Notes under the pieces: model-generated
Seen by the model: the letters and a program-made list of their open reading frames with translations, nothing else
Databases searched by the model: none
Told to the model about the DNA's origin: nothing
NCBI GenBank assembly: GCA_965240325.2
Contig: OZ251223.1
Coordinates: 3,038,001 to 3,102,000 of the forward strand
Direction of reading: 5' to 3'
DNA length: 64,000 bases
DNA from: Rebecca billardiae RCC1528
Lineage: Eukaryota; Protista; Haptophyta
Position numbers and translations under genes: made by a program
Part shown: positions 12,091 through 55,500 of the stretch, one piece after another
How positions within the stretch are numbered: the stretch's first letter is position 1
Layout: the number at the start of each line of letters is the position of its first letter

Positions 12091-13032
12091 TTAGGAGCTG
12101 GTCCGTCCCCAGAACATGTGCTGTACTTCCGGCGTGTTGACGACCCCTGGCGCAGATGCGAAGCACAGCACCGCCACCAGGCGGTCGCAGGAGCCATCCA
12201 CCCGCGTCACGCGATGCAGGGAGCGCTGCCCATTGAAGATCTGCAGTGTGCCCGCTCTGAAGCACGCCACTTGCACCGGTGGCGATTGCACCTCTCGCGG
12301 CTCAGATGAGGCACGCTCGCCAGCGCCAGCGCTCGGCGTGTATTCGGTGGTCGTGCGGATGACATGCGCCACACGCGGCGCTGCGAGCTCGCGGTCGGAG
12401 CCTCGAAGCGGCGATGTGAACTCAAAGTCGCCGCCAGCCTCTGCAGGTTGCAAGCAGAGGGTGGTGGTGAACTCTGCTTGGTCAAAGTGCCATGCATGGT
12501 ACATGCCCGGGCGGAAGACGTTGACGCTGCAGCAGCCGAGAGGATCAGCAAGCCTGTGAATCGGCCTACCCGTGACGGCCCCGATGAACGCAAGCAGACC
12601 CTCCCACTCGTAGAGCCGCCGGAGCGCCGAGTCATCACCCAGCTCGTCGTACGCCGTGGAGGCGACACGCGTCCTCATCGGGAGGTTGCGGACGTGCGAT
12701 GGAGTTCGGTCGGTAGTCTCGGGTAGCTGGTATGCGTTGTGTTCAGCGTCCGTCGTGTACGCTGACGGCGCCGCGCGCCGCGCATCTGCCGCCGCGCTCT
12801 TAAGGGCCGCAGGGTGCAAGAAGCCCTCAAAGCTCACGATGCCGTCGCGCTCCAGCTGTTTGCGGGCGTTGCTGAGCAGCCTTCTCGCTACAGGGGTCGA
12901 CAGGTCGTGAACAGGGTACCTGTGCAGATTGACGCCGCAGGACCACGCCCGCTCACACGCGCTCTCGTCTCCCGACACTGTGAGGGGCAGCAGGAAGAGG
13001 ACGAGTCTGATGGTGAAGACGGCCGCCGCCAT
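12091..13032 (-). CDS. Fe(II)/2-oxoglutarate oxygenase, BesD/HalD-like family, HxD (hydroxylase-type), with signal peptide
   Basis: MAAAVFTIRLVLFLLPLTVSG signal. LERDG..F..FL, HNAY, WHFD..FTTTL.LQ..EAGG.FEF, GTLQIFNG..SLHRVT.V.G...RLVAV give the H-x-D...H triad plus the 2OG-binding Arg. Confidence 0.8.
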   Translation of the reverse strand: MAAAVFTIRLVLFLLPLTVSGDESACERAWSCGVNLHRYPVHDLSTPVARRLLSNARKQLERDGIVSFEGFLHPAALKSAAADARRAAPSAYTTDAEHNAYQLPETTDRTPSHVRNLPMRTRVASTAYDELGDDSALRRLYEWEGLLAFIGAVTGRPIHRLADPLGCCSVNVFRPGMYHAWHFDQAEFTTTLCLQPAEAGGDFEFTSPLRGSDRELAAPRVAHVIRTTTEYTPSAGAGERASSEPREVQSPPVQVACFRAGTLQIFNGQRSLHRVTRVDGSCDRLVAVLCFASAPGVVNTPEVQHMFWGRTSS

Positions 13033-13141
13033 GATTTGTGGCCGGACGGACCGACTCACGACAGGCGGTCGACAGCCGACAAACCGGGCGTCGTCAGCTG
13101 CGCGCTCGCCGGTGGCCGACAACGGGTGGCAGCGCGGCGCC

Positions 13142-13981
13142 ATGCCCCGCGAGGGAGACCGGTACGTGCTCGCGGACGCGCAGAAGCGCGACTTCTTCGA
13201 GAATGGCCTCGCGACGCTCGACGGCTTTCTCACCGAGCCAGAGGTTGCTGAGATTGAGGGCGTGTACGCTCGATTCATGTCGCGCGAGATCCACGTACCA
13301 GGCAAAGACTTTTGCGACATGAGCAAGCCGTTCGAGACGCCGTTCGAGGAGTACTCGATCATCAACTGCATGCTCCCCACCAAGTACTACCCGCCCCTTG
13401 AAGGGAACGTGTACGAGCGCCTGGCGGCCACGGTCGCGGCGCAGCTCTTCCCGGACACACCGATGGCAAAGGACTACGACCAGCTGCTGAACAAGCGGCC
13501 GGGGAAGACGGACGCCGTGTTTGGTTGGCACCAAGATATGGCCTATTGGCCCAACACGCAGATGACCCCCAACACCACAACCGTCACCTTCTCGCTGGCG
13601 ATCGACTCGACGTCTGAGGCGAACGGGTGCCTGCGGTACGTGCCTGGCTCGGGCCGGGCCAAGACGCTCCGCCCGCACCGCCCGCTCGGCACGAGCCGCG
13701 ATGACGCGCACGCCGTGCAGGCGGAGGTGCGCGAGGGAGAAGACGAGATCCGGCTCGCACCCGCGCCGCGCGGCACCGTCACCATCCATGACGAGTGGGT
13801 GGTGCACGGTTCAGGGGGTAACACCTCGAGCGGCGAGCGGCGGACGTACGTCGTCGCGTTCCGCGCGGCGGAGACTGTCAAGCTGGAGCGCGCGGCGGGC
13901 TTCACGCACTCGCACAACGATGAAGTCAACTGGGACTCCTTCCACCCGCACGAGGCAGCGGCCGAGACAGCCAGCAAGTGA
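13142..13981 (+). CDS. Phytanoyl-CoA dioxygenase (PhyH)-family Fe(II)/2OG oxygenase
   Basis: FFENG, WHQD, NGCLRYVPGS and HGSGGN....RR motifs. Confidence 0.9.
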   Translation: MPREGDRYVLADAQKRDFFENGLATLDGFLTEPEVAEIEGVYARFMSREIHVPGKDFCDMSKPFETPFEEYSIINCMLPTKYYPPLEGNVYERLAATVAAQLFPDTPMAKDYDQLLNKRPGKTDAVFGWHQDMAYWPNTQMTPNTTTVTFSLAIDSTSEANGCLRYVPGSGRAKTLRPHRPLGTSRDDAHAVQAEVREGEDEIRLAPAPRGTVTIHDEWVVHGSGGNTSSGERRTYVVAFRAAETVKLERAAGFTHSHNDEVNWDSFHPHEAAAETASK

Positions 13982-44100: not shown

Positions 44101-46090
44101 ATGGCGTCGCGCGGCTTCTCCGCGGCGCTCGCTGGGGCCGATGTCACGCAGGACGGGTGGTTCAGACTCGTCTCGGCGGCGCGGGACGCCAGTGAAGATG
44201 CGACCCAGACGTGTGGTCGCCCTCGCTCGGCGTCACATCCCGCACCCGGACCGCCTGTGTCAGGCCTTGCGCGCGCGAGTGCGACCCGCCCGTCGCCGAG
44301 CCGGCGGCACACGGACGGAAGCGCGCCAAGCACGGGCAAAACCCACCACGCAAGGCACGCATTGCACGCGCATTCAAGCACGGTCTTTCTCGCACTCGGC
44401 CCCGAGGGCGAGGGCCCCGACGAGGAGCGGCCCCAATGGGGCAGCCACGTTGAGTACGTGCTTTCATTAGTGGGCTATGCGGTGGGCATTGGCAACCTGT
44501 GGCGCTTCCCCATGCTCGCGATGCAGCACGGTGGGGGCGCGTTCCTCGTGCCGTACTTCCTCTTTGTTGTCACTTTGGGCTGCCCGCTGCTCGTGCTCGA
44601 GCTGTGCGTGGGCCAGGTGTTCCAGATGTCGGCCAGCCGCCTGTGGGGAGGGCTTCATAGACGGCTTGCTGGCCTGGGCTGGGCATCCGCGCTCACGTCC
44701 TTCACTGTCGCCGTGTATTTCAACATGCTCATCGCGTGGACGCTCTTCTACCTCGTGCTTTCGTTTCGCGCCCCGCTCCCGTGGACCAGCGCCAACCCAG
44801 CCCCGTGCATGGCGACGGCGGCGCGGACAGCAGACCCAGCCGCCGCTTTCTGGGAGGCCTGTGTCACGCAGCAGCTGCCGCTCGCCGACCCTGACTGGGC
44901 CGCGCCGAACTGGCCGCTGGTGGGCAGCCTGGCCGCCGCGTGGCTTGTCGCGTGGGGTGCGCTACACAACGGCATCGAGTCGTCAGGCAAGGTGGTGCTC
45001 TTCACCGCCACCTTCCCGTACGCGGCTCTGCTCATCCTTTTCCTCCGCGCGGCCACGCTCGAGGGCGCCGCGGCAGGCCTCGCTTACTATGTGACGCCCT
45101 CCTTTTCCAAGCTAGGCGACGTCGAGGTACACGCGCGTTCGGCCGCCCGCGCGCGGTGGGTGCGTCCCGGGCTCCCGCTCTGCCGCTGATCCGTGCACGC
45201 GCGGCGCGCGGCTGCGCCCGGGCGTGCAGGTGTGGGTCGCTGCGGCCAACCAAGTCTTCTTCTCTTTTGGCGTTGGCACCGGCACCATTGTCGGCTACGC
45301 GTCGTACACGCCCAAGGGCTCGCCGTTCCTGCGCGACGGGCTGGCCGTCGGGCTGATCAACGCGGGGACCTCGTTGTTCGCGGGGCTCGTCGTCTTCGCC
45401 ATCCTTGGACACCTCGCACACGAGCAGGGCGTGGCGGTGAGCGAGCTTGAGCTCGGAGGCCCAGGCCTCGCCTTCATCGCCTACCCGACCGCGATTGCGC
45501 TGCTGCCTGCGGCGCGCGTGTATGCGGTGGTCTTCTTTCTCATGCTTCTCTCGCTCGCGCTGGACACGCAGATGGGTCTGCTCGAGGTGGGCGTGTCCGC
45601 ACTTGCCGAGCATGGGCTCTTCCTCTTCCGGAAGCGAATGCTCGCCGTGGGCATGGCAGTGGTGTGCGCTCTCGGCTTCATGCTCGGCGCGTGCTTTGCC
45701 ACGCGCGGCGGCGTCGACCTGCTCAGGCTCTTCGACAGCTACGCGTGTCTCGTGTCCCTCCTGACGATCTGCTTCCTCGAGCTCGTTGCCGTCGTCGGCG
45801 TGTATGGCACGCACAGCTTCACCGCGCGCGTGCGCTGCGAGACGGGCGTGGCAATCCCCCACTGGCTCACAGCCCTGTGGACGTTTGTCTCGATGCCGCT
45901 GTGCCTGTTGCTCGTCGTGCTCGCACTGCGCGGGGCTCTCGTCCGCACGAGCGAGTCGTGGCCCGAATGGGCGAGTACACTGGGCTGGCTGCTTGCACTG
46001 GCGCCCATACTTGTGATCGCGGGAGGGGGTGTGCTGGCGTCGAGCCGTGCACATGCCACTGATGGCCAGGTGCGCTCGCGCAAGTGCTGA
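44101..46090 (+). CDS. Na+:neurotransmitter/amino-acid symporter (SLC6/NSS)
   Basis: Intron 45127-45229. Motifs RPQW, GYAVGIGNLWRFP, GGGAFLVPY, SGKVV.FTATFPY, W..AA.QVFFS and GPGLAFIAYP. Confidence 0.93.
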
Positions 46091-46364: not shown

Positions 46365-47888
46365 TCATCGCGATAGAGGCGGCAGCTGAGAGATGCGCTT
46401 GGGCAAGACGAGGTACTCGTTCCCCGCGAATGCGCTGGTGCCGTGGCCGAGCGCAGCCGCGTGCTTCCCGCACGAGTACACGCAGCCGTCCGCCGTCACG
46501 AACAGCGCGAGGGTGCCGGAGAGCGAGCAGTCCACCACGCGCTCGTCAGCGAGCCCCTCAACGTGCGCCGGGGGAACCTCGCGTACGCCCATGTACCCGA
46601 GGCCCAGCTGCCCGCACGAGTTGTCACCAAACGTGTGGACGCTACCGTCCGCGCCCACCACTGCGCTGCTGGCAAAGCTCGCGCAAGCTCGCACGGAGCG
46701 CACGTCCGCAAGCGCCTCGATGCACCTTGGCACGAGCTGGCGATGCGAGAGGGAGTCGCAGCCGAGGCAGCCGTTCAGGTTTGCCCCGAAGGAGTGCACG
46801 CGGCCCGCCGCGTCGACAACCAGGCTGTGCGAACTGCCCGCGCTCACGTGCACGGCACGCTCCTCTCCGGAGAGCGCCTCGACGCGCCGTGGCGTGTGCT
46901 GATCGTGCTTGTTGCCATGGCCAAGCTGGCCTTGCCCGCCGTAGCCGCACGAGTAGGTCGCGCCGTCTGTTGAGAGGAGGAGTGCGTGGGCAACCCCCAT
47001 GGACGCCGCGCCGACCCGTACGCCAGCCAGCGCCTCGATGCGCCGCGGCCGCCACAGCCCATCCGTGTGGCCGTGGCCGAGCTGACCGCAATCATTCCGG
47101 CCCCAGCTGTACACAGCGCCTGCAACGCCGACCGCACAGCTGAAGCCGCCACCGGCGGCGATGTGAACGACGAACTCGCCAGACAGCGTGCCGAGCGCGG
47201 CGAACGAGTCGCACGATGCGTTCTCATCGAGCTCTCGTGGCTCGCCTAGCCCGAGCTGGCCGCACCAGTTCTCGCCGCAGGCGTAAACCACGCCGGCATC
47301 GCTCAGCGCGAGCAGGTGCTCCCGGCCTGCGGCGACGGCGCACACGCGCACTGCCGAGAGCGAGGCGACGTGCGTCGGCACGAGCACGGGCATGACCTTC
47401 GGATGCCCAAGTGCATTGGGCAAGCTAAACGCCACGTTCCACCAGACTTCCTCCAGCATGTTCTCATCGGTCGCCTCCTGCTCGCCACACGTGTGCAGCC
47501 TGCCGTCCGCGTCGACGAAAGCGCTGAATTCGTGAGCGCACGCGACGGCGGCCCCATGCACTCGCGCTAGCTCGAGCACGCGCTCACGAGCAAAGAGCTC
47601 CTCCGTCCACGTGAGCACGCTCGGCGGTCGAACATTCGGCAGCGTGCGGTCGTGGTCACGCGCGCGCGCGCGCTCGCGCAGCGCTTGCTCGACTGGCGAG
47701 CGGCTGCCCGGCACGCCGCGGAAGAGGCGCGAGGTGGCGTTCGCGGCAGCGAGATCGCGCGCATGCGCAACGAGGGTGATGATTCGCTCGATCACCTCGG
47801 CCGGGAGGTCGCCAAGGGTCGGCGGTGTGAGAGCTTGCACATCTTCGACGTGGTGGGGAGGATTGGCGATACTCGTAGCGGCGGCCAT
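46365..47888 (-). CDS. F-box + RCC1-repeat protein
   Basis: F-box LGDLPAEVIERII..DLAAA..TSRLFR, followed by multiple RCC1 repeats (G.VY..G.N..GQLG.G). Confidence 0.85.
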   Translation of the reverse strand: MAAATSIANPPHHVEDVQALTPPTLGDLPAEVIERIITLVAHARDLAAANATSRLFRGVPGSRSPVEQALRERARARDHDRTLPNVRPPSVLTWTEELFARERVLELARVHGAAVACAHEFSAFVDADGRLHTCGEQEATDENMLEEVWWNVAFSLPNALGHPKVMPVLVPTHVASLSAVRVCAVAAGREHLLALSDAGVVYACGENWCGQLGLGEPRELDENASCDSFAALGTLSGEFVVHIAAGGGFSCAVGVAGAVYSWGRNDCGQLGHGHTDGLWRPRRIEALAGVRVGAASMGVAHALLLSTDGATYSCGYGGQGQLGHGNKHDQHTPRRVEALSGEERAVHVSAGSSHSLVVDAAGRVHSFGANLNGCLGCDSLSHRQLVPRCIEALADVRSVRACASFASSAVVGADGSVHTFGDNSCGQLGLGYMGVREVPPAHVEGLADERVVDCSLSGTLALFVTADGCVYSCGKHAAALGHGTSAFAGNEYLVLPKRISQLPPLSR

Positions 47889-48193
47889 CTTGCTCCCTTC
47901 TGGAGGGCGGAGAATCGAACACGGAACACTGTTCATGACCAATAAAGGAATCGTGACATTCGTGACTGCCACGACCGGAGCTCCGGGCGAGCTCCCTCAC
48001 TCCTCAGCTCGTCGGTCGGCGGTCGGTCCGGACGTAGCTGTGACACTGAGTGCCTGTGGCCGCTTTCAATAGCTAGGCGGATGGCAGATCACACGCCAGT
48101 CCGTGGCAGTAATATCTAGAGTCTAGTTCTGTACAAGTCAGCCAACATTGGATGGCGGGCCACCACTCACCAGCACGTGCCAGCGCGACCGCA

Positions 48194-49567
48194 TCACGCG
48201 GCTGCGAGCACGAACGCCGGCGACGCGGTCGCGGAGCGTGCCGCGCGGCGCGGCTGTGCCCTCTCACTGGCCTTGTACTCGCGCCATGAGGCGCGGCCGT
48301 GCTCAGCGCGCGCATGCATGGCCTCGGTGCGCAGCTGCACTTCCAGTGGCTCGCCCGAGCCGAGGCTCACGCCCAGGTGCACCGACTGGTACCCGTTGGG
48401 CTTGGGCGCCGCGACATAGTCCTTGTACCGGCGCGCGTCCTCCGCCCACAGCTCGCGCACCGCCTCGCACGCGCGCGAGAGCAGCTCGGCCTCGTCCGCG
48501 CCGGAGCGCAGGACGACGCGCGCGGCGAGCAGGTCACACACCGGCTTCGCGCGGAGCACCGCCTTCTCGAACACCGAGGCGCGCGACTTGAGCCGCGTCT
48601 CCACTCGGAACGAGCCCTCAGGCAGCGCGTGCGCCAGCGTCTGCTCCAGCTCGGTCGCCGCGCGCTCGAGCGCCGCGCCCGCCGTGCGCGAGTGGCGCGC
48701 GTGCCACCGGCTGACGGCGCCGTGGGACTGCGGCACGAGCGCGGCGCAGCTCGCGTCGGCGAGGGTGTCCACCACCTTGTCGAGGCCGAACGCGCGCGCC
48801 GCCGGGCTGATGGCGCTCGCAGCACGCGAGACGCGCCGGCTGAGCGCAAGCCGCGAGACACGCTCGAGCTTGGCCCACCGCGGCAGCTGCTCGCCGCCGA
48901 TGGCAGGGTAGAGCGCCGAGCGCACCGCGCGCGCGGGCTCGGCCGGAGTTGCCACCGGGATCGCATCCGCATCCGCCGCCATCACCCCCACCGCGTCCTC
49001 GCGCGCCGAGCGCGTCGCGCGCGGGGCCAGCCGGCGCCGGCGCAGCGCGCTCGCAGACAGGCAGAGCAGCGCGGTGCGTGCGAGCGCCGTCTGCGCCATG
49101 TGCGCCGGGCCAGCCTGGTGCGCGTGCGCGGGCGGCGGCGTGGCCGAGCCGAAGCGCGGTGTCGCCGCCCTGAAGGCCGCCGGGAGCTGCGCCGCCGGTG
49201 CCACGAGCGGGCGCGCCGGCTGGTGCTGGCGCCTGTGCATGGCGTGCACGCCGAGGGCATGCCCCGTCCAGCCGCGCGCCGAGACGGCAGCTGCGCTCAT
49301 CGCGGTGGCGCGCGTGGCTGCTGAGACCAGCACGAATGCGCGCGTCAGCACCCGCAAGCTGCGGCCGCTCTGCGAGCGCCGCGATCCGGCTCGTGCGCCG
49401 TGGCGCGCGCGCCGGCTATGTGCATGCGCGCAAGCCGCCACCGCGCGCGCGGCGTGCATGTTGCGGCCGAGCGCGTGGGGGGCAGCCGAGCTGGTGGTAG
49501 TCGGCATGTCGAGCTCGCTCACGTCGAGAGGGCGCGCCTCTGTCGCGAATGCTGCTGCGTCGAGCAT
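48194..49567 (-). CDS. RelA/SpoT homolog, (p)ppGpp synthetase domain only; start uncertain (49681, 49567 or downstream)
   Basis: RLKS..SVFEK, DLLAARV, KDYVAAPKPNGYQSVH and EVQLRT..MH..AE.G..SW..YK. No HD hydrolase motif. Long transit-peptide-like N-terminus. Confidence 0.85.
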   Translation of the reverse strand: MLDAAAFATEARPLDVSELDMPTTTSSAAPHALGRNMHAARAVAACAHAHSRRARHGARAGSRRSQSGRSLRVLTRAFVLVSAATRATAMSAAAVSARGWTGHALGVHAMHRRQHQPARPLVAPAAQLPAAFRAATPRFGSATPPPAHAHQAGPAHMAQTALARTALLCLSASALRRRRLAPRATRSAREDAVGVMAADADAIPVATPAEPARAVRSALYPAIGGEQLPRWAKLERVSRLALSRRVSRAASAISPAARAFGLDKVVDTLADASCAALVPQSHGAVSRWHARHSRTAGAALERAATELEQTLAHALPEGSFRVETRLKSRASVFEKAVLRAKPVCDLLAARVVLRSGADEAELLSRACEAVRELWAEDARRYKDYVAAPKPNGYQSVHLGVSLGSGEPLEVQLRTEAMHARAEHGRASWREYKASERAQPRRAARSATASPAFVLAAA

Positions 49568-50120
49568 CGAGCGCGCGCGTGAAGCTATGCCGGAAAGCCG
49601 GCGGACGTTCCGCGGTGCCTTTGCCCTGCACGTTTTGAGCCCAACTGCGGTACCGGTCCGCTTGCTTCCGTAACTCTTCATCTTTGCGTCATCCTGCTCG
49701 AGAGGGGCACAACGGGCAACCGACGTTGGTGAAGTCAGGCGAGCACCGTGACGGAACAGTGCCCCCCAAAGGCTTCGTCCAATGAGAGCCGCCGAATTCG
49801 AGCGCCTTCCGGTCTCCAAGTCGGAATTCTGAATAGGGCCCTGGCGAATTCCCGCGCGCGCGAAGAGCCCAACCGTCACACGACCAGAATTGGCGCGAAA
49901 AGCGGGGGTGTCCCACCAGTCTGCACACCCGGACCTACGCCCCGGACACCCCCCCCCCCCGCGCGCGCCAACGAGACGGACGAGCAGCGAGCCAAGCGGC
50001 GCGCGCAGGAGCGGGAGGCGGCCGCCGCGCGACACGCTCGTTGGGGGTTGGTCCGGTACGGTCCGGCTGCAGACTGTCCGCCGCACCGAAGCGGAAGCCG
50101 ACGCGGCTGACTCAATAAAG

Positions 50121-52328
50121 ATGGCGGTGGCCATCGGCTCCATGCTCAGAGCGGCGCTCCGGCGGGGACGATGCCGCGGGCTGGCGTCCCTCGCGGGCGA
50201 CGACTTGCTTCGGCAGCGCGTGCGCACCCCTGACGGCGTCGACCTCGCCGTCACCGTCGGCGGCGACGTGCGCGCGCCGCGCACGCTCGTGTGCATCCCT
50301 GGAGGGCTGGGCACTGCAGAGACCGACTTTGCGCCGCAGCTCGCAGGCGGCCTGGGCGTGGGCCTTCGCGTGGTGGCCTTCGACCCGCGTGGCTACGGTG
50401 GCTCGCAACCGCCTACGCGCACCTTCCCCGTGCCGCCCGCCGCCCCGCACTCGTTCTATGAGCAGGACGCGCGCGATGCGCTCGCGGTTGCGGACGCGGT
50501 GTGCGGCCCGTCGGGCCGCTTCTCCGTGCTCGGCTGGTCGGACGGCGCGAACGTGGCGTGCGTGCTCGCCGGAGGCGCGGCTCGCGCGCGCATCGACGGC
50601 CTCGTCGTGTGGGGCGGCAACGCGTACGTGAGCGCGGATGACGTGCAGCTGTGGGAGCGAATGCGTGACGTGCGCACCGCGTGGAGCGCGCGCATGCGCG
50701 AGACGCTCGGAGCGGTGTACGGCGGCGACGACGGGCTGCAGGCGCTGAACGACCGCTTCACCGACGCGATGGCCGCGCTGCACGCCGCTGGCGGCGACGT
50801 CTGCCTCGCCGCGCTGCACCGCATCGGCTGCCCAACGCTCGTCGTGCACGGCAGGCTCGACCCGCTCGTGCCACGGACGCATGCCGAGTACATTGCGGCG
50901 CAGGTGGCGCGCGCGCGGCTGGCGTTCGTGGACGAGGGGCGGCACAACGTGCACCTGCGCCACGCGCTGGCCTTCAACCACCTCGTGCGCCGCTTCCTCG
51001 TGCTCGAGGCCCCCGCCGCGCCACCCGCGGCGGCGGCGGCGGCGGATCCGGCCATGGCGGCCGCTGCGGCCGCCGCGCCCTCGGCGGACGTCGCGCCCGA
51101 GCACGGCGCCGCGGCCGTGTCCGCCGCGGAGGAGGAGGTGGACGTGGACGTGCACGAGCTGGCGTACGGCTTCATGCGCTCCAAGGCGCTCTTCGCCGCG
51201 CTGCACGCCGGCGTCTTCGACGCCGTCGCCGCCCTCGAGGCGCGCGCGGCCAGCGCCGACGGTACCGCCTCGGCGGCCGCGCGCGCGCCCACCTTTGCCC
51301 AGCTGGAGTCGGAGCTCGTGCGCGCAGGCGGGCGCGTGCGCGGCGAGCGGCTGCGCACGCTGCTCGGCGCGTGCGTGGCCACGCGCACGCTCGTCCTGCG
51401 CCACGCGTCGCCGCCCGCTGACGGCTCCGGCGCGCCGTACGAGCCTCGCTTCGGCCTCAGCCGCTCGGCGCGCGAGCAGCTGGTGCGCGGCGCTGCGCAC
51501 TACTGGGGCGACTACCTCCGGCTGCAGGTGGACGAGCACTTCTACGCGCGGCTGGGCAGCCTGCCGCGGCTGCTCGAGGAGGGCGGCAAGGACGACGCGT
51601 ACGAGGCGTGGTTCGAGCAGAGCCCCGAGGACGCCGAGCAGTACACGCGCGCGCAGCACAACGGCTCGCTCGCCACCGCGCGCGCGCTGCTTCGGCGCGT
51701 GCACGCGCTGCGTGACGCGCGCTCGCTGCTCGACGTCGGCGGCGGCTCGGGCGCGCTCGCCATCGAGCTCTGCCGCGCGCACGCAGACGCACGCGCGACC
51801 GTGCTCGACCTGCCCGCCGTGATCGACGCCGCCCAGCGCATCGTCGGCGAGGAGTCCGCCGATGTGCGCGCGCGCATCGCGCTCAGGCCCGGCTCGGCGA
51901 CGAGCCCGAGCTGGGCTGCGGCGGGCGTGGAGCTCGGCGGGCACGACGTGGTGTGCTGCTCCTACCTGTGCGGCTCGGTCGCGGCCGACGCGCTGCCCGC
52001 GCTCTTGGCGCGCGCGTTCGCCGCGTGCGCGCCCGGGGGCACCGTCGTCGTGCACGACTTCATGACGGCGAACGGTGGCGCGGCGAGCGGCCCGCGGCAC
52101 GCGCCGCTGTGGGCGCTCGCGCACGTGGCCGTCAACCCGCTCGGCGCCGCGCTCACGCCCGCGCGCGTCGTGGGCTGGCTGGACGCCGCCGGCTTCCGCG
52201 CGCCGTTCGTGCAGCCGATGATTGGTGACCTCACCACGCTCATCACGGCGCGAAAGCCAGCCGTTCGCCCGCCCGCAGTCGCCCAGCCTCGTCAACTCTC
52301 CGACGACGGCGCTGAGCGGAAGATATGA
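50121..52328 (+). CDS. DSYB: Fusion of a BPHL/valacyclovirase-like alpha/beta hydrolase and a DsyB/DSYB-like SAM-dependent methyltransferase
   Basis: Single stop-free ORF. Hydrolase: PGGLGTAETDFAPQL, DPRGYG.S.PP.R.FP, GWSDG, WGGNA, HG..DPLVP, GRHNVH. Methyltransferase: AYGFM.SKALFAALH.GVF, GDYLRLQVD, Y..WF, QHNGSLATA, LLDVGGGSG, SYL, HDF, GP....LW.L.H, PMI...T. Confidence 0.88.
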   Translation: MAVAIGSMLRAALRRGRCRGLASLAGDDLLRQRVRTPDGVDLAVTVGGDVRAPRTLVCIPGGLGTAETDFAPQLAGGLGVGLRVVAFDPRGYGGSQPPTRTFPVPPAAPHSFYEQDARDALAVADAVCGPSGRFSVLGWSDGANVACVLAGGAARARIDGLVVWGGNAYVSADDVQLWERMRDVRTAWSARMRETLGAVYGGDDGLQALNDRFTDAMAALHAAGGDVCLAALHRIGCPTLVVHGRLDPLVPRTHAEYIAAQVARARLAFVDEGRHNVHLRHALAFNHLVRRFLVLEAPAAPPAAAAAADPAMAAAAAAAPSADVAPEHGAAAVSAAEEEVDVDVHELAYGFMRSKALFAALHAGVFDAVAALEARAASADGTASAAARAPTFAQLESELVRAGGRVRGERLRTLLGACVATRTLVLRHASPPADGSGAPYEPRFGLSRSAREQLVRGAAHYWGDYLRLQVDEHFYARLGSLPRLLEEGGKDDAYEAWFEQSPEDAEQYTRAQHNGSLATARALLRRVHALRDARSLLDVGGGSGALAIELCRAHADARATVLDLPAVIDAAQRIVGEESADVRARIALRPGSATSPSWAAAGVELGGHDVVCCSYLCGSVAADALPALLARAFAACAPGGTVVVHDFMTANGGAASGPRHAPLWALAHVAVNPLGAALTPARVVGWLDAAGFRAPFVQPMIGDLTTLITARKPAVRPPAVAQPRQLSDDGAERKI

Positions 52329-52523: not shown

Positions 52524-55500
52524 CTACAAGTACGACGACTGATGAACTGCTGACGACAGCAAAATGTTCTCGATCGCCGTGCGCACCGCAGCTTCCGCTT
52601 CAGCGGCAGCAGCAGCAGCGCCCTCGACGGCTGCCTCTGCCTCGTCGCGTGCAGCCGTCGCGCGGTCGACCACCGCCTGTGCCGTAGCGAGCTCCGCCTC
52701 GGCCGCCCCCGCGACGCTCAATGGCGTGCCCGCAAGCCGGCGCTCGCGTGTCGCGACGGCCGTGCAGTCGTCGGCGACGCCTCGCGCGTCGGCGAGCGCG
52801 GCCGCGTCCGCCTCGGCCCGTCGCTGCGCGGTCTCGGCCGCGCTCGCCGCGTCGGTCGTACTGCGCTGCAGCTCCTCCTCCTGTGCCAGCAGGCGCGCGA
52901 GCTCCGCGCGCGCTGCGTCGGCTTTGGCCTGCGCGTCGCGTGCCTTCTCAGTCGCGCCGGCGAGCGCCGCGTCGCGGGACTGGCCGATCGGCAGCGTGTG
53001 CTGGTTCGAGCGGAGCTTGGCGAGCACGGCCAGCTCAATCTTGAGCGCGGCCTCGCACCGGTCGCGCGCGCGCCGCGCGGTGGCGATCTCGCCGCGCGTG
53101 CTGTGCCACTCCGCCTGTGCGCGCTTGGCGCGCTCGGCCGCCGCCTGCGCGCCCGTGCGCGCGCCCTTCACCGAGAGCTCGAGCGCACGCGCGGCCTCCG
53201 CCGTCTGCGCTTCTCGCGCGAGCGCGGCCCTCGCGCGCTGGAGCACGGCGCCGTAGCCGCGCTCGACCTCGGCGAGCTTGGCGGCGCGCGCGTCGCGCGC
53301 CTCCGCGGCCGTGGCGAGCTCGCGGCGCGCAGCGGACGCGCGCTCAGCCGCGCGCCGCGCGGCCGCACGCAGCGGCTCCGACCTCTTGCGCTCGGCCTCG
53401 GCCAGCGCGAGCGCGCGCACCCGCGCGAGCCGTGCGCGCTTCCTCGCGCGCGCGCGCCGCAGCCGCTCCAAGATGAGCTGGCGCGCTCGCTCCTCGTCCT
53501 CGCCGAGTGCCGCGGCGATCAGCGCGCGCTCGACGCGCACACGCGCTGCTTCGAGCGAGTCATCCGCGCGCGCCGCGCCGAGCAGCGCGCGCTCGACCGC
53601 CGCGCGTGCCGCCTCGTGCGCGTCCTCCCTCTGCGCGGCCGCGAGCAGCTGTGCCTCGATGCGCTCGCGCGCAGCCAGCGCAGCCAGCGCCGCGTCCGCC
53701 GCGCGCGCCGCAGCGATGAGCTCGCCCTCCGCGCGCGCGCGCGCTGCTTCGCGCGCGTCGTCCGCGCGCGCCGCGTCGAGCAGCGCGCCCTCGATGCGCG
53801 CGCGCGCGGCGTCGAGCTTGTCCTCGGCGGCAGCGGCCGCGAGCAGAGCCGACTCGAGCGCTCCGCGCGCGGCCTCGCGCGCGTCCTCGGCGCGAGCTGC
53901 GGCGAGCAGCTCGCCCTCGAGGCGGGTGCGCTCCGCCACTGCCGCCTCGGCTGCGGCGTCAGCAGCCAGCGTGGCCGCCTCCGCCTCCGCTGCCGCCACC
54001 GCCTCCGCTGCAGCGGCAGCAGCCTCCGCCTCCGCCGCCCTCGCCTCCGCCGCCTCCGCTGACGGCTCAGCCTGGGCCGCGGTCGGAGCCGCCGCCGCAG
54101 CATCCGCCGCCGCCGCCGCTGGCCCACCTGCCGCCGCTGCCGGTGCCTCCGAAGCCGGTGGCCCGAGTGCCGGCGCCTGCGCCGCGGCCGGCGCGTCCTC
54201 CCCCGCTGGCGCCGCACTTGCGGACGCCACCGGAGCCACCGCCCTGCCGAGCTCCGCCGCAGGGGCGAGGGCAGCCAAGCTGTCCGCACCGCGGGGCGCC
54301 GGTGCGGGCACGGCGCGTGTGGGGCTCAGCGGCGCAGGCGCGGCCGACGTGGGTGTGGCTGGAGCGCCAGCGAGCAGCGGAGCAGCTGCGGGCGCGAGCC
54401 CGAGCGTTTCGCCCTCCGCATCGCGCGGCGCGCCCACTCGCGCCGCGGGGGCCTCCCAGCCCGCTCCCTCGCGCTCCTGCGGTGGCGACACGAGGCCGGC
54501 GGGCGCCGCGGCCTCGGCTGCCGCGAGCTCGGCAGCGGCGAGGACGGCCGCGGCGGCGGGCGCGCTCACGCCGTCGGCCGCGGGCGCGCCGGCGATCACC
54601 AGCGACACCTCGCCGCTGGCCAGCCTGCGCCTGCCGGCTGCGCCCATCGCGCGCCCACCCGCCGCCAGCCCTCTCGCCGCACGTACCGCGCCGCCAGCCC
54701 TGCGCCAGCGCGCGCGCGCGTGCGCGGCCGGCCGGTGCGTTGGGAGCGCATGCGCGCTGCGCGCATGCCTGCCGCGCGCGACCCGCTGGATCGCGACGGC
54801 CGCGAGCCACGGGGCGCGATCGCCCGCACGGCGCAGCCGCGCGCGCTCGCGCGCGCCGCGCGCCTCGTGCCGCGCGAGCAGCCCGCGCGCCGCAGTCTGC
54901 AGGGCGCGCGCCGCCGCCGCGCGCCTCGCCGCCTCCGTGCTCGCGAGGTGGCGGCGGAAGGTGCGCTGCACCGCGAGCGCGGCGCGGCGGCGCTTGAGCT
55001 CGAGGCGGCGGGGCGTCACGGCGTCGAGCCTCGCCGTGGGCACAGCGGGCGGCGCGCGCAGCCGCTCGAGCCCGCCGCGCTTCGGCCCCTCGTCCATCAC
55101 CCACGCGCGCACCCGCCGCCCATCCGAGGCCGTCAGTGTGACCATGCGGACCGAGCGCGCGGCGTTGCTGAGCGCGCCCGCCGCGCACTCGAAGAGGCCG
55201 TCGTCCGGGCTGTCGAGCAGCGTCTCAAGCTCGCGCAGCGCACGCCGGTCCCGACGCAGCGCGACGATCCCATCCGCGCTGACGCACGTGACCTGCGACG
55301 CAGACCCCAGGGCACGCGGCGGGGCGGGGGCGCGGCACACGCGCTCACGTCAGCGCGCGTGCTCGCGCTGGGGGGCGACCCGGTCGAGGGCGCGGGCAGC
55401 GCGGGCGGTGCGCGCGCGCGCGCGCGCACGTTTCGAAGCGCTGCCACGACGTAGTACCGCGCCCGACCCGACGCGCCCCGGTCCGCCAGCGCGGCCAGAA

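Follow-up and report, generated by a model that had tools for sequence, protein, structure and literature searches.

A predicted BPHL-type hydrolase-DSYB fusion in Rebecca billardiae as a basal, non-diatom member of an existing DSYB subclade

Dimethylsulfide is formed from dimethylsulfoniopropionate (DMSP), one of the major sulfur compounds of the sea, and ocean omics surveys use DSYB as the marker gene for predicting algal DMSP production. Clones of dsyB/DSYB were found to give no activity in Escherichia coli. The DSYBs have been termed "single-domain S-methyltransferase enzymes" by Wang et al. 2024 (PMC11306096). In the same work (Supplementary Table 10, PMC11306096) OEU17621 is given as the accession for the previously ratified DSYB of Fragilariopsis cylindrus, an enzyme (JGI 238045) that has been cloned and functionally characterised (PMC12614181). 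DSYB has been reported in both chloroplasts and mitochondria, and another DSYB has been described with a mitochondrial transit peptide (PMC12614181). The subject of this analysis is a gene on the forward strand (50121..52328) of a 64,000-nucleotide stretch of contig OZ251223.1 from Rebecca billardiae RCC1528 (the whole stretch is referred to below as the window), the predicted product of which comprises a BPHL (valacyclovir hydrolase)-type alpha/beta hydrolase domain followed by a DSYB-type methyltransferase.

The initial annotation had taken this fusion to be a new architecture and the characterised DSYBs to be stand-alone, and neither statement could be upheld. A cluster look-up revealed that one of the homologues, P0175, is OEU17621.1, an 'alpha/beta-hydrolase [Fragilariopsis cylindrus CCMP1102]' of 705 residues with a Pfam architecture identical to that of the window protein, encoded by a single uninterrupted ORF (open reading frame) on scaffold KV784357.1. 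The accession listed for at least this characterised DSYB therefore has the hydrolase-methyltransferase layout, and ~30 proteins of this kind, OEU17621 among them, exist. The architecture is thus already in the DSYB reference set via the accession OEU17621, and it is the BPHL-type domain of this DSYB subclade that seems to have gone unremarked: no mention of a hydrolase domain of DSYB was found in the open literature, Curson et al. 2018 lying outside that search. As judged from its sequence, the window gene is a basal, non-diatom member of the existing DSYB subclade. In the databases, fusion DSYBs are named for their hydrolase half, e.g. 'alpha/beta-hydrolase', 'Valacyclovir hydrolase' (P0021, Seminavis robusta) or 'pimeloyl-ACP methyl ester carboxylesterase/UbiE'.

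An open plus-strand frame extends over 49890-52328; starting at its first ATG, 50121 (MAVAIGSMLRAALRRGRCRGLAS...), it yields 735 codons and a stop, a complete coding sequence that needs no intron (50121..52328, +), just as originally described; homologues of full length align with it end to end at 40-50% identity. The G+C content of the locus (~76%) resembles that of the flanking DNA. Pfam searches with the 735-aa product report Abhydrolase_1/Abhydrolase_6 (aa 55-284), an O-methyltransferase dimerisation domain (aa 341-422) and Methyltransf_2 (aa 499-693). A structural model was built with AlphaFold2 on an alignment of 27 homologues (mean predicted local distance difference test score, pLDDT, 77; predicted template modelling score, pTM, 0.75), the pTM of this two-domain model being only a hint of a fixed mutual arrangement of the domains. 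The N-terminal 26 residues (50121..50198, +) are Arg-rich with zero acidic residues, have pLDDT <50 (aa 1-26) and a predicted helix (aa 2-14), and are aligned with variable Arg/Ser-rich extensions of the homologues; they form a probable mitochondrial presequence. The hydrolase domain (aa 30-296; 50208..51008, +), supported by the Protein Data Bank (PDB) match to 2ocg, Foldseek and Pfam, is followed by an Ala/Pro-rich linker with an acidic end (aa 297-340; 51009..51140, +) that is predicted to be disordered (pLDDT <50 for aa 298-338). The methyltransferase consists of an N-terminal dimerisation/substrate-lid domain (aa 341-480; 51141..51560, +), supported by the Pfam dimerisation match and the alignment with 7wdq, and a Rossmann domain predicted to bind S-adenosylmethionine (SAM) and to carry out catalysis (aa 481-712; 51561..52256, +), supported by the 7wdq/7wdw match and Methyltransf_2. 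The C-terminal tail (aa 713-735; 52257..52325, +) is unconserved in the alignment and predicted with low confidence in the model.

The N-terminal domain had been assigned to the family of BPHL, which is mitochondrial in humans, and this assignment stands. With aa 1-310 as a query against all PDB sequences, human valacyclovir hydrolase/BPHL (2ocg) was the top match (E-value 7e-53, aa 54-293), the next one having an E-value of 7e-7, and Foldseek aligned the model with 2ocg with a target TM-score of 0.93 and a root mean square deviation of 2.3 A. The Ser-Asp-His triad of BPHL (Ser122-Asp227-His255) is matched in this alignment by Ser140, Asp247 and His275. All three hydrolase motifs quoted initially (GWSDG, DPLV and GRHNVH) could be located: the nucleophile Ser140 and the adjacent Asp141 (50538..50543, +), which pair with BPHL Ser122 and Asp123, lie in GWSDGA (50532-50549), the catalytic acid Asp247 (50859..50861, +) in HGRLDPLV (50847-50870), and the catalytic His275 (50943..50945, +) in GRHNVH (50937-50954). 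Ser140, Asp141, Asp247 and His275 are invariant in the aligned fusion proteins (27/27), and the domain as a whole exhibits 41-48% identity to stand-alone 'valacyclovir hydrolase-like' proteins of animals and protists. It is probable that the predicted hydrolase is catalytically competent. Homocysteine thiolactone is hydrolysed efficiently by BPHL (kcat/Km 7.7e4 M-1 s-1), whose D123 neutralises the alpha-amino group that is free in this substrate and in valacyclovir (PMC4198189); the PDB entry 2ock is the D123N mutant of BPHL. Because Asp141, the equivalent of BPHL D123, is invariant, the hydrolase may be expected to favour substrates with a free alpha-amino group beside the scissile (thio)ester.

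For the C-terminal domain, the search of PDB with aa 321-735 reported DsyB of Nisaea denitrificans (7wdq/7wdw) at the top with an E-value of 1e-48, followed by the next methyltransferase at 6e-11, and 7wdq was also ranked first by Foldseek; the Pfam families of this part are PF08100 and PF00891. Both E-values, 7e-53 to BPHL and 1e-48 to DsyB, are far below what chance would give. Nisaea DsyB contacts 4-methylthio-2-hydroxybutyrate (MTHB) through Y97, Q101, Y129, Y142, Q146 and H291, and SAM through S150, G173, D196, D223, A224 and S239 (PMC10989797). Using a bacterial DsyB with Nisaea-identical numbering as the reference for mapping, we found that the window protein keeps 11 of these 12 contact residues: six of six for MTHB, namely Y465 and Q469 (corresponding to DsyB Y97 and Q101 and located in the dimerisation/lid domain), Y494, Y508, Q512 and H668, and five of six for SAM, namely S516, G540, D563, A593 and S614, while DsyB D223 is replaced by Ser592. 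The Rossmann domain accordingly holds Tyr494, Tyr508, Gln512, Ser516, Gly540, Asp563, Ser592, Ala593, Ser614 and His668. Of the 26 other fusions, 25 have Ser at the D223 position, among them OEU17621, listed as the ratified F. cylindrus DSYB, and so do 7 of 37 stand-alone eukaryotic DSYBs, whereas bacterial DsyBs have D or N. The motifs GDYLRLQVD, AQHNGSLATA and LWALAH are all present in the product, and the statement that QHNGS.ATA is the algal form was correct, since eukaryotic DSYBs exhibit AQHNGS[LMV]AT[AG] and bacterial DsyBs QHAGSL. With DsyB as the best structural match, a position in the eukaryotic DSYB clade and 11/12 key residues kept, the C-terminal domain is identified by sequence comparison as DSYB, in agreement with the original assignment. 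It very likely converts MTHB and SAM to 4-dimethylsulfonio-2-hydroxybutyrate (DMSHB); this activity is assigned to the window gene mainly because its subclade contains an accession listed as a ratified MTHB methyltransferase.

The initial annotation had proposed that the same architecture be sought in other algae. A search with the full-length protein reported nine two-domain proteins (606-745 residues, 40-48% identity) and a search with the methyltransferase only reported ~30, from diatoms and unnamed algae, the named carriers being Fragilariopsis, Seminavis robusta ('Valacyclovir hydrolase'), Skeletonema marinoi and Nitzschia sp. These sequences come from different assemblies, which argues strongly against an assembly join in the window. 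The family is nevertheless narrow, because an exhaustive HMMER search at 50% clustering retrieved just two or three full-length representatives together with junction-spanning fragments; close relatives of the window fusion were not found in the metagenome scan. Among the 27 aligned fusions the mean pairwise identity is 54% in the hydrolase, 57-64% in the methyltransferase and 11% in the linker, the hydrolase thus being conserved to a similar degree as its partner domain, and the key methyltransferase residues are invariant like those of the hydrolase, the Ser at the D223 position being counted apart. The length of the linker ranges from 10 to 48 residues, that of the window protein being the longest (48). 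The suggestion that a linker Met (~51054) could give a DSYB-only isoform found no support, as the linker cannot be aligned among the homologues and the Met is thus not conserved.

Each domain was also placed in a phylogeny with the DsyB/DSYB and BPHL sets, as had been recommended, and the window protein falls within both groups. The maximum likelihood tree calculated with IQ-TREE for 62 methyltransferase domains (DsyB/DSYB-like sequences only) separates three groups: the fusions, with 27 sequences counting that of the window (support 100/99), the stand-alone DSYBs of eukaryotes, with 22 (94/94), and the bacterial DsyBs, with 13 (100/100). A larger quick tree agrees, with the window and the fragmentary P0010 basal in the fusion clade, followed by P0001 and P0002/P0003 (unnamed algae) and then by the diatoms. 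In the midpoint-rooted hydrolase tree the fusions likewise form one clade (support 96), nested among stand-alone BPHL homologues of animals and protists, and their branching order is the same as in the methyltransferase tree. Because one clade with matching branching order is obtained for both domains, the trees fit a single fusion event followed by joint descent.

A few apparently stand-alone members of the fusion clade were inspected (P0033, L005 and L006, with P0045, P0052, P0023, P0234, P0214, P0223 and P0190 outside this inspection). All three turned out to be split calls of fusions, with no fission: in P0033 a hydrolase ORF precedes that of the methyltransferase with a 14-nt overlap, and in L005 (2896-5002) and L006 (2006-3360), two environmental relatives, both domains are present but the reading frame is broken at one common position in the N-terminal domain of the methyltransferase (query aa 370-398). 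The break is probably due to a short intron of conserved position, at which prokaryote-style callers divide the gene into a hydrolase and a methyltransferase. The P0023 cluster, for its part, includes a two-domain member of 654 aa. The closest relative, P0010/L001 (80% identical, 82% nucleotide identity), is similar to the window only from GDYLRLQ on; we considered it as a DSYB-only isoform and rejected it, since upstream of GDYLRLQ the transcript-like contig (L001 1-614) consists of an (AC)n-rich unrelated stretch, probably an intron or an assembly chimera, which makes it uninformative on the fusion.

Taken together, with moderate confidence we consider the window gene to encode a nuclear two-domain enzyme, probably mitochondrial, in which DSYB and a BPHL-type hydrolase were joined by a fusion of single origin and kept together by selection. 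The DSYB part, probably as a homodimer formed via its N-terminal dimerisation domain as in DsyB, would carry out the committed step of the transamination route to DMSP, in which the sulfur of MTHB is methylated with SAM and DMSHB is formed. The hydrolase would act on (thio)esters of the alpha-amino-acyl type, with homocysteine thiolactone as the most plausible substrate. For every DMSHB formed, one S-adenosylhomocysteine and hence one homocysteine would be released, and in the fused form the thiolactone-clearing capacity would rise and fall together with the methyltransferase. This role of the hydrolase is offered tentatively, as the less likely part of the picture. We also regard it as rather doubtful that the BPHL-like domain is a second working activity that the fusion-type DSYBs need in vivo; such an activity could clear homocysteine/homoserine (thio)lactone arising from heavy use of SAM, or process an unrecognised amino-bearing intermediate. 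Several points weigh against the two-domain enzyme as here proposed. The link to homocysteine is indirect, and neither MTHB nor DMSHB has an alpha-amino group; since S-adenosylhomocysteine hydrolase is as a rule a cytosolic enzyme, the compartment of the fusion protein is not necessarily the one where homocysteine arises. Furthermore, the SAM-contacting D223 of DsyB is replaced by Ser592, and the window sequence has a biased composition and sits on a long branch (0.96, the longest in the clade).

The long branch, together with the identity of only 41-50% to the other fusions and the substitution of D223, could mean that the specificity of the methyltransferase has drifted away from MTHB, the gene being DSYB-like but not one for DMSP synthesis. 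If the genome is that of a pavlovophyte, the published surveys would point in the same direction, as Pavlova sp. CCMP459 and Exanthemachrysis were scored without DSYB (Wang et al. 2024, Supplementary Table 3, PMC11306096). We nonetheless consider such drift quite improbable, since all six MTHB contacts are kept, the same D223-to-Ser replacement is found in the F. cylindrus accession listed as ratified, and the window sequence lies inside the DSYB clade. It is still harder to regard the ORF as an artefact of an assembly join or read-through, with two separate proteins in the cell: the L001 contig of the closest relative, which has only the C-terminal half of the methyltransferase, would speak for this, but its similarity ends at the (AC)n-rich stretch, where the sequence resembles an intron or chimera rather than a 5' end. 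Moreover, ~30 independent sequences from different assemblies, among them the uninterrupted ORF of F. cylindrus, exhibit the same architecture, short one-gene contigs carry the whole fusion, and the apparent stand-alone clade members inspected are split calls of fusions, which makes an artefact extremely improbable.

The other two alternatives concern the relationship between the activities. The hydrolase might act directly in DMSP synthesis, by freeing or processing an ester, lactone or thioester of MTHB, DMSHB or DMSP, or by catalysing an unassigned algal step, so that the fusion would be a two-step enzyme like the bifunctional DMSP synthase DsyGD, which provides a precedent. The retention of the fusion with an intact active site across the whole DSYB subclade, the linker of just 10 residues in some members, a pTM (0.75) compatible with a fixed mutual orientation and the existence of other algal steps without identified enzymes would all agree with such a role. 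However, the accepted transamination route needs no hydrolytic step, the invariant Asp141 (BPHL D123) suggests that the substrates carry a free alpha-amino group, which is absent from 4-methylthio-2-oxobutyrate, MTHB, DMSHB and DMSP, and the identity of 41-48% to ordinary stand-alone BPHLs suggests a conserved and not a new function; we therefore judge a direct role to be improbable. Alternatively, the two activities may be metabolically unrelated, and the fusion may serve only the co-expression and co-targeting of two organellar enzymes, or the hydrolase may have a part in the structure or regulation of the DSYB dimer. Such a role would be easily reconciled with a linker that is highly variable and predicted to be disordered, with the wide occurrence of stand-alone BPHL homologues, with the fact that most DSYBs work without a hydrolase, and with gene neighbourhoods that differ between the window and F. 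cylindrus, so that the context adds no functional link. Yet every clade member that is sufficiently complete has kept the fusion, all four catalytic residues are invariant and no case of secondary fission was seen, which argues for selection on the combination. Nor would the triad be needed if the role were purely structural, and we regard this alternative as rather unlikely. The reading we prefer is still the selected, two-domain enzyme of single origin.

Analysis of the genomic neighborhood revealed a RelA/SpoT synthetase-type gene (48194-49681, -; PF04607, E-value 1.5e-19, match at ~48269-48601) in a head-to-head arrangement with the DSYB fusion, ~440 bp upstream of its ATG. At the F. cylindrus locus the neighbours of the fusion are RRP14/SURF6 and DUF155, hence the pairing with RelA/SpoT is not conserved. 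On the other side, ~200 bp past the stop of the fusion, there is a convergent 938-codon ORF (52524-55340, -), rich in Ala, Glu and Arg and coiled-coil-like. Elsewhere in the window are a seven-bladed RCC1-repeat protein (46365-47972, -), a sodium:neurotransmitter symporter fragment (44101-45189, +; SNF, E-value 2.5e-65, matching the first half of the profile only), probably a single exon from a longer gene, and an ORF (12091-13383, -) with a weak Pfam match to HalD (Halogenase D; E-value 2.6e-9).

The significance of the fusion lies in the fact that a whole branch of DSYB, including a diatom reference accession, is permanently joined to a BPHL-type hydrolase with intact catalytic residues. Surveys of DMSP genes that rely on names could miss or mis-score the fusion DSYBs, and domain-aware searches would be more reliable. 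The window adds a GC-rich alga, basal in the clade and not a diatom, to the carriers of the fusion-type DSYB and, if the genome is that of a pavlovophyte, DSYB would be present in a lineage from which DSYE alone has been reported. Should the hydrolase be needed in vivo, a whole branch of DMSP synthases, of the diatom type and that of this alga, would be two-activity enzymes that have been treated as single-domain ones; should it be irrelevant to DMSP, the finding would reduce to a tidy new member of the family.

Among the known systems, the diatom fusions, i.e. the F. cylindrus DSYB (OEU17621.1; JGI 238045) and the proteins of Seminavis, Skeletonema and Nitzschia, are the closest: they exhibit the same order of presequence, BPHL-like hydrolase, variable linker, dimerisation domain and Methyltransf_2, belong to the same clade in both trees, and share the catalytic and substrate-binding residues as well as the Ser at the D223 position. 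They are only 41-45% identical to the window protein, which branches basally in the clade, outside the diatoms, exceeds all others in the length and Ala content of its linker and is encoded in a very GC-rich genome (~76% GC at the locus). The stand-alone DSYB of eukaryotes (haptophyte and dinoflagellate type, e.g. Chrysochromulina tobin KOO32714) and Nisaea DsyB (7WDQ/7WDW) share with it the fold, 11/12 contact residues and the motifs GDY..Q, QH.GS and LW.L.H, but they have 327-430 residues without the hydrolase domain and form separate clades. Human BPHL (2OCG) exhibits ~39-45% identity across the domain, the same triad and the Asp after the nucleophile, but it is a stand-alone protein of ~290 residues, whereas the algal domain is covalently joined to DSYB. 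The bacterial 'bifunctional alpha/beta hydrolase / class I SAM-dependent methyltransferase' proteins (Methyltransf_20), which are the nearest clusters by language-model features (score 0.89), and the BioC-BioH-like fusions also combine the two kinds of domain in a single chain, the hydrolase preceding the methyltransferase. The likeness to the Methyltransf_20 fusions is one of architecture only, as Pfam reported no match to PF12147 (Methyltransf_20) in the window protein and its methyltransferase belongs to PF00891. DsyGD from Gynuella sunshinyii is likewise a DMSP-pathway S-methyltransferase fused to a second catalytic domain; however, its methyltransferase is unrelated (of the DsyG/DSYE type) and N-terminal, and its partner is a decarboxylase that carries out the next step of the pathway, whereas the partner in the window fusion is a hydrolase without an assigned pathway step.

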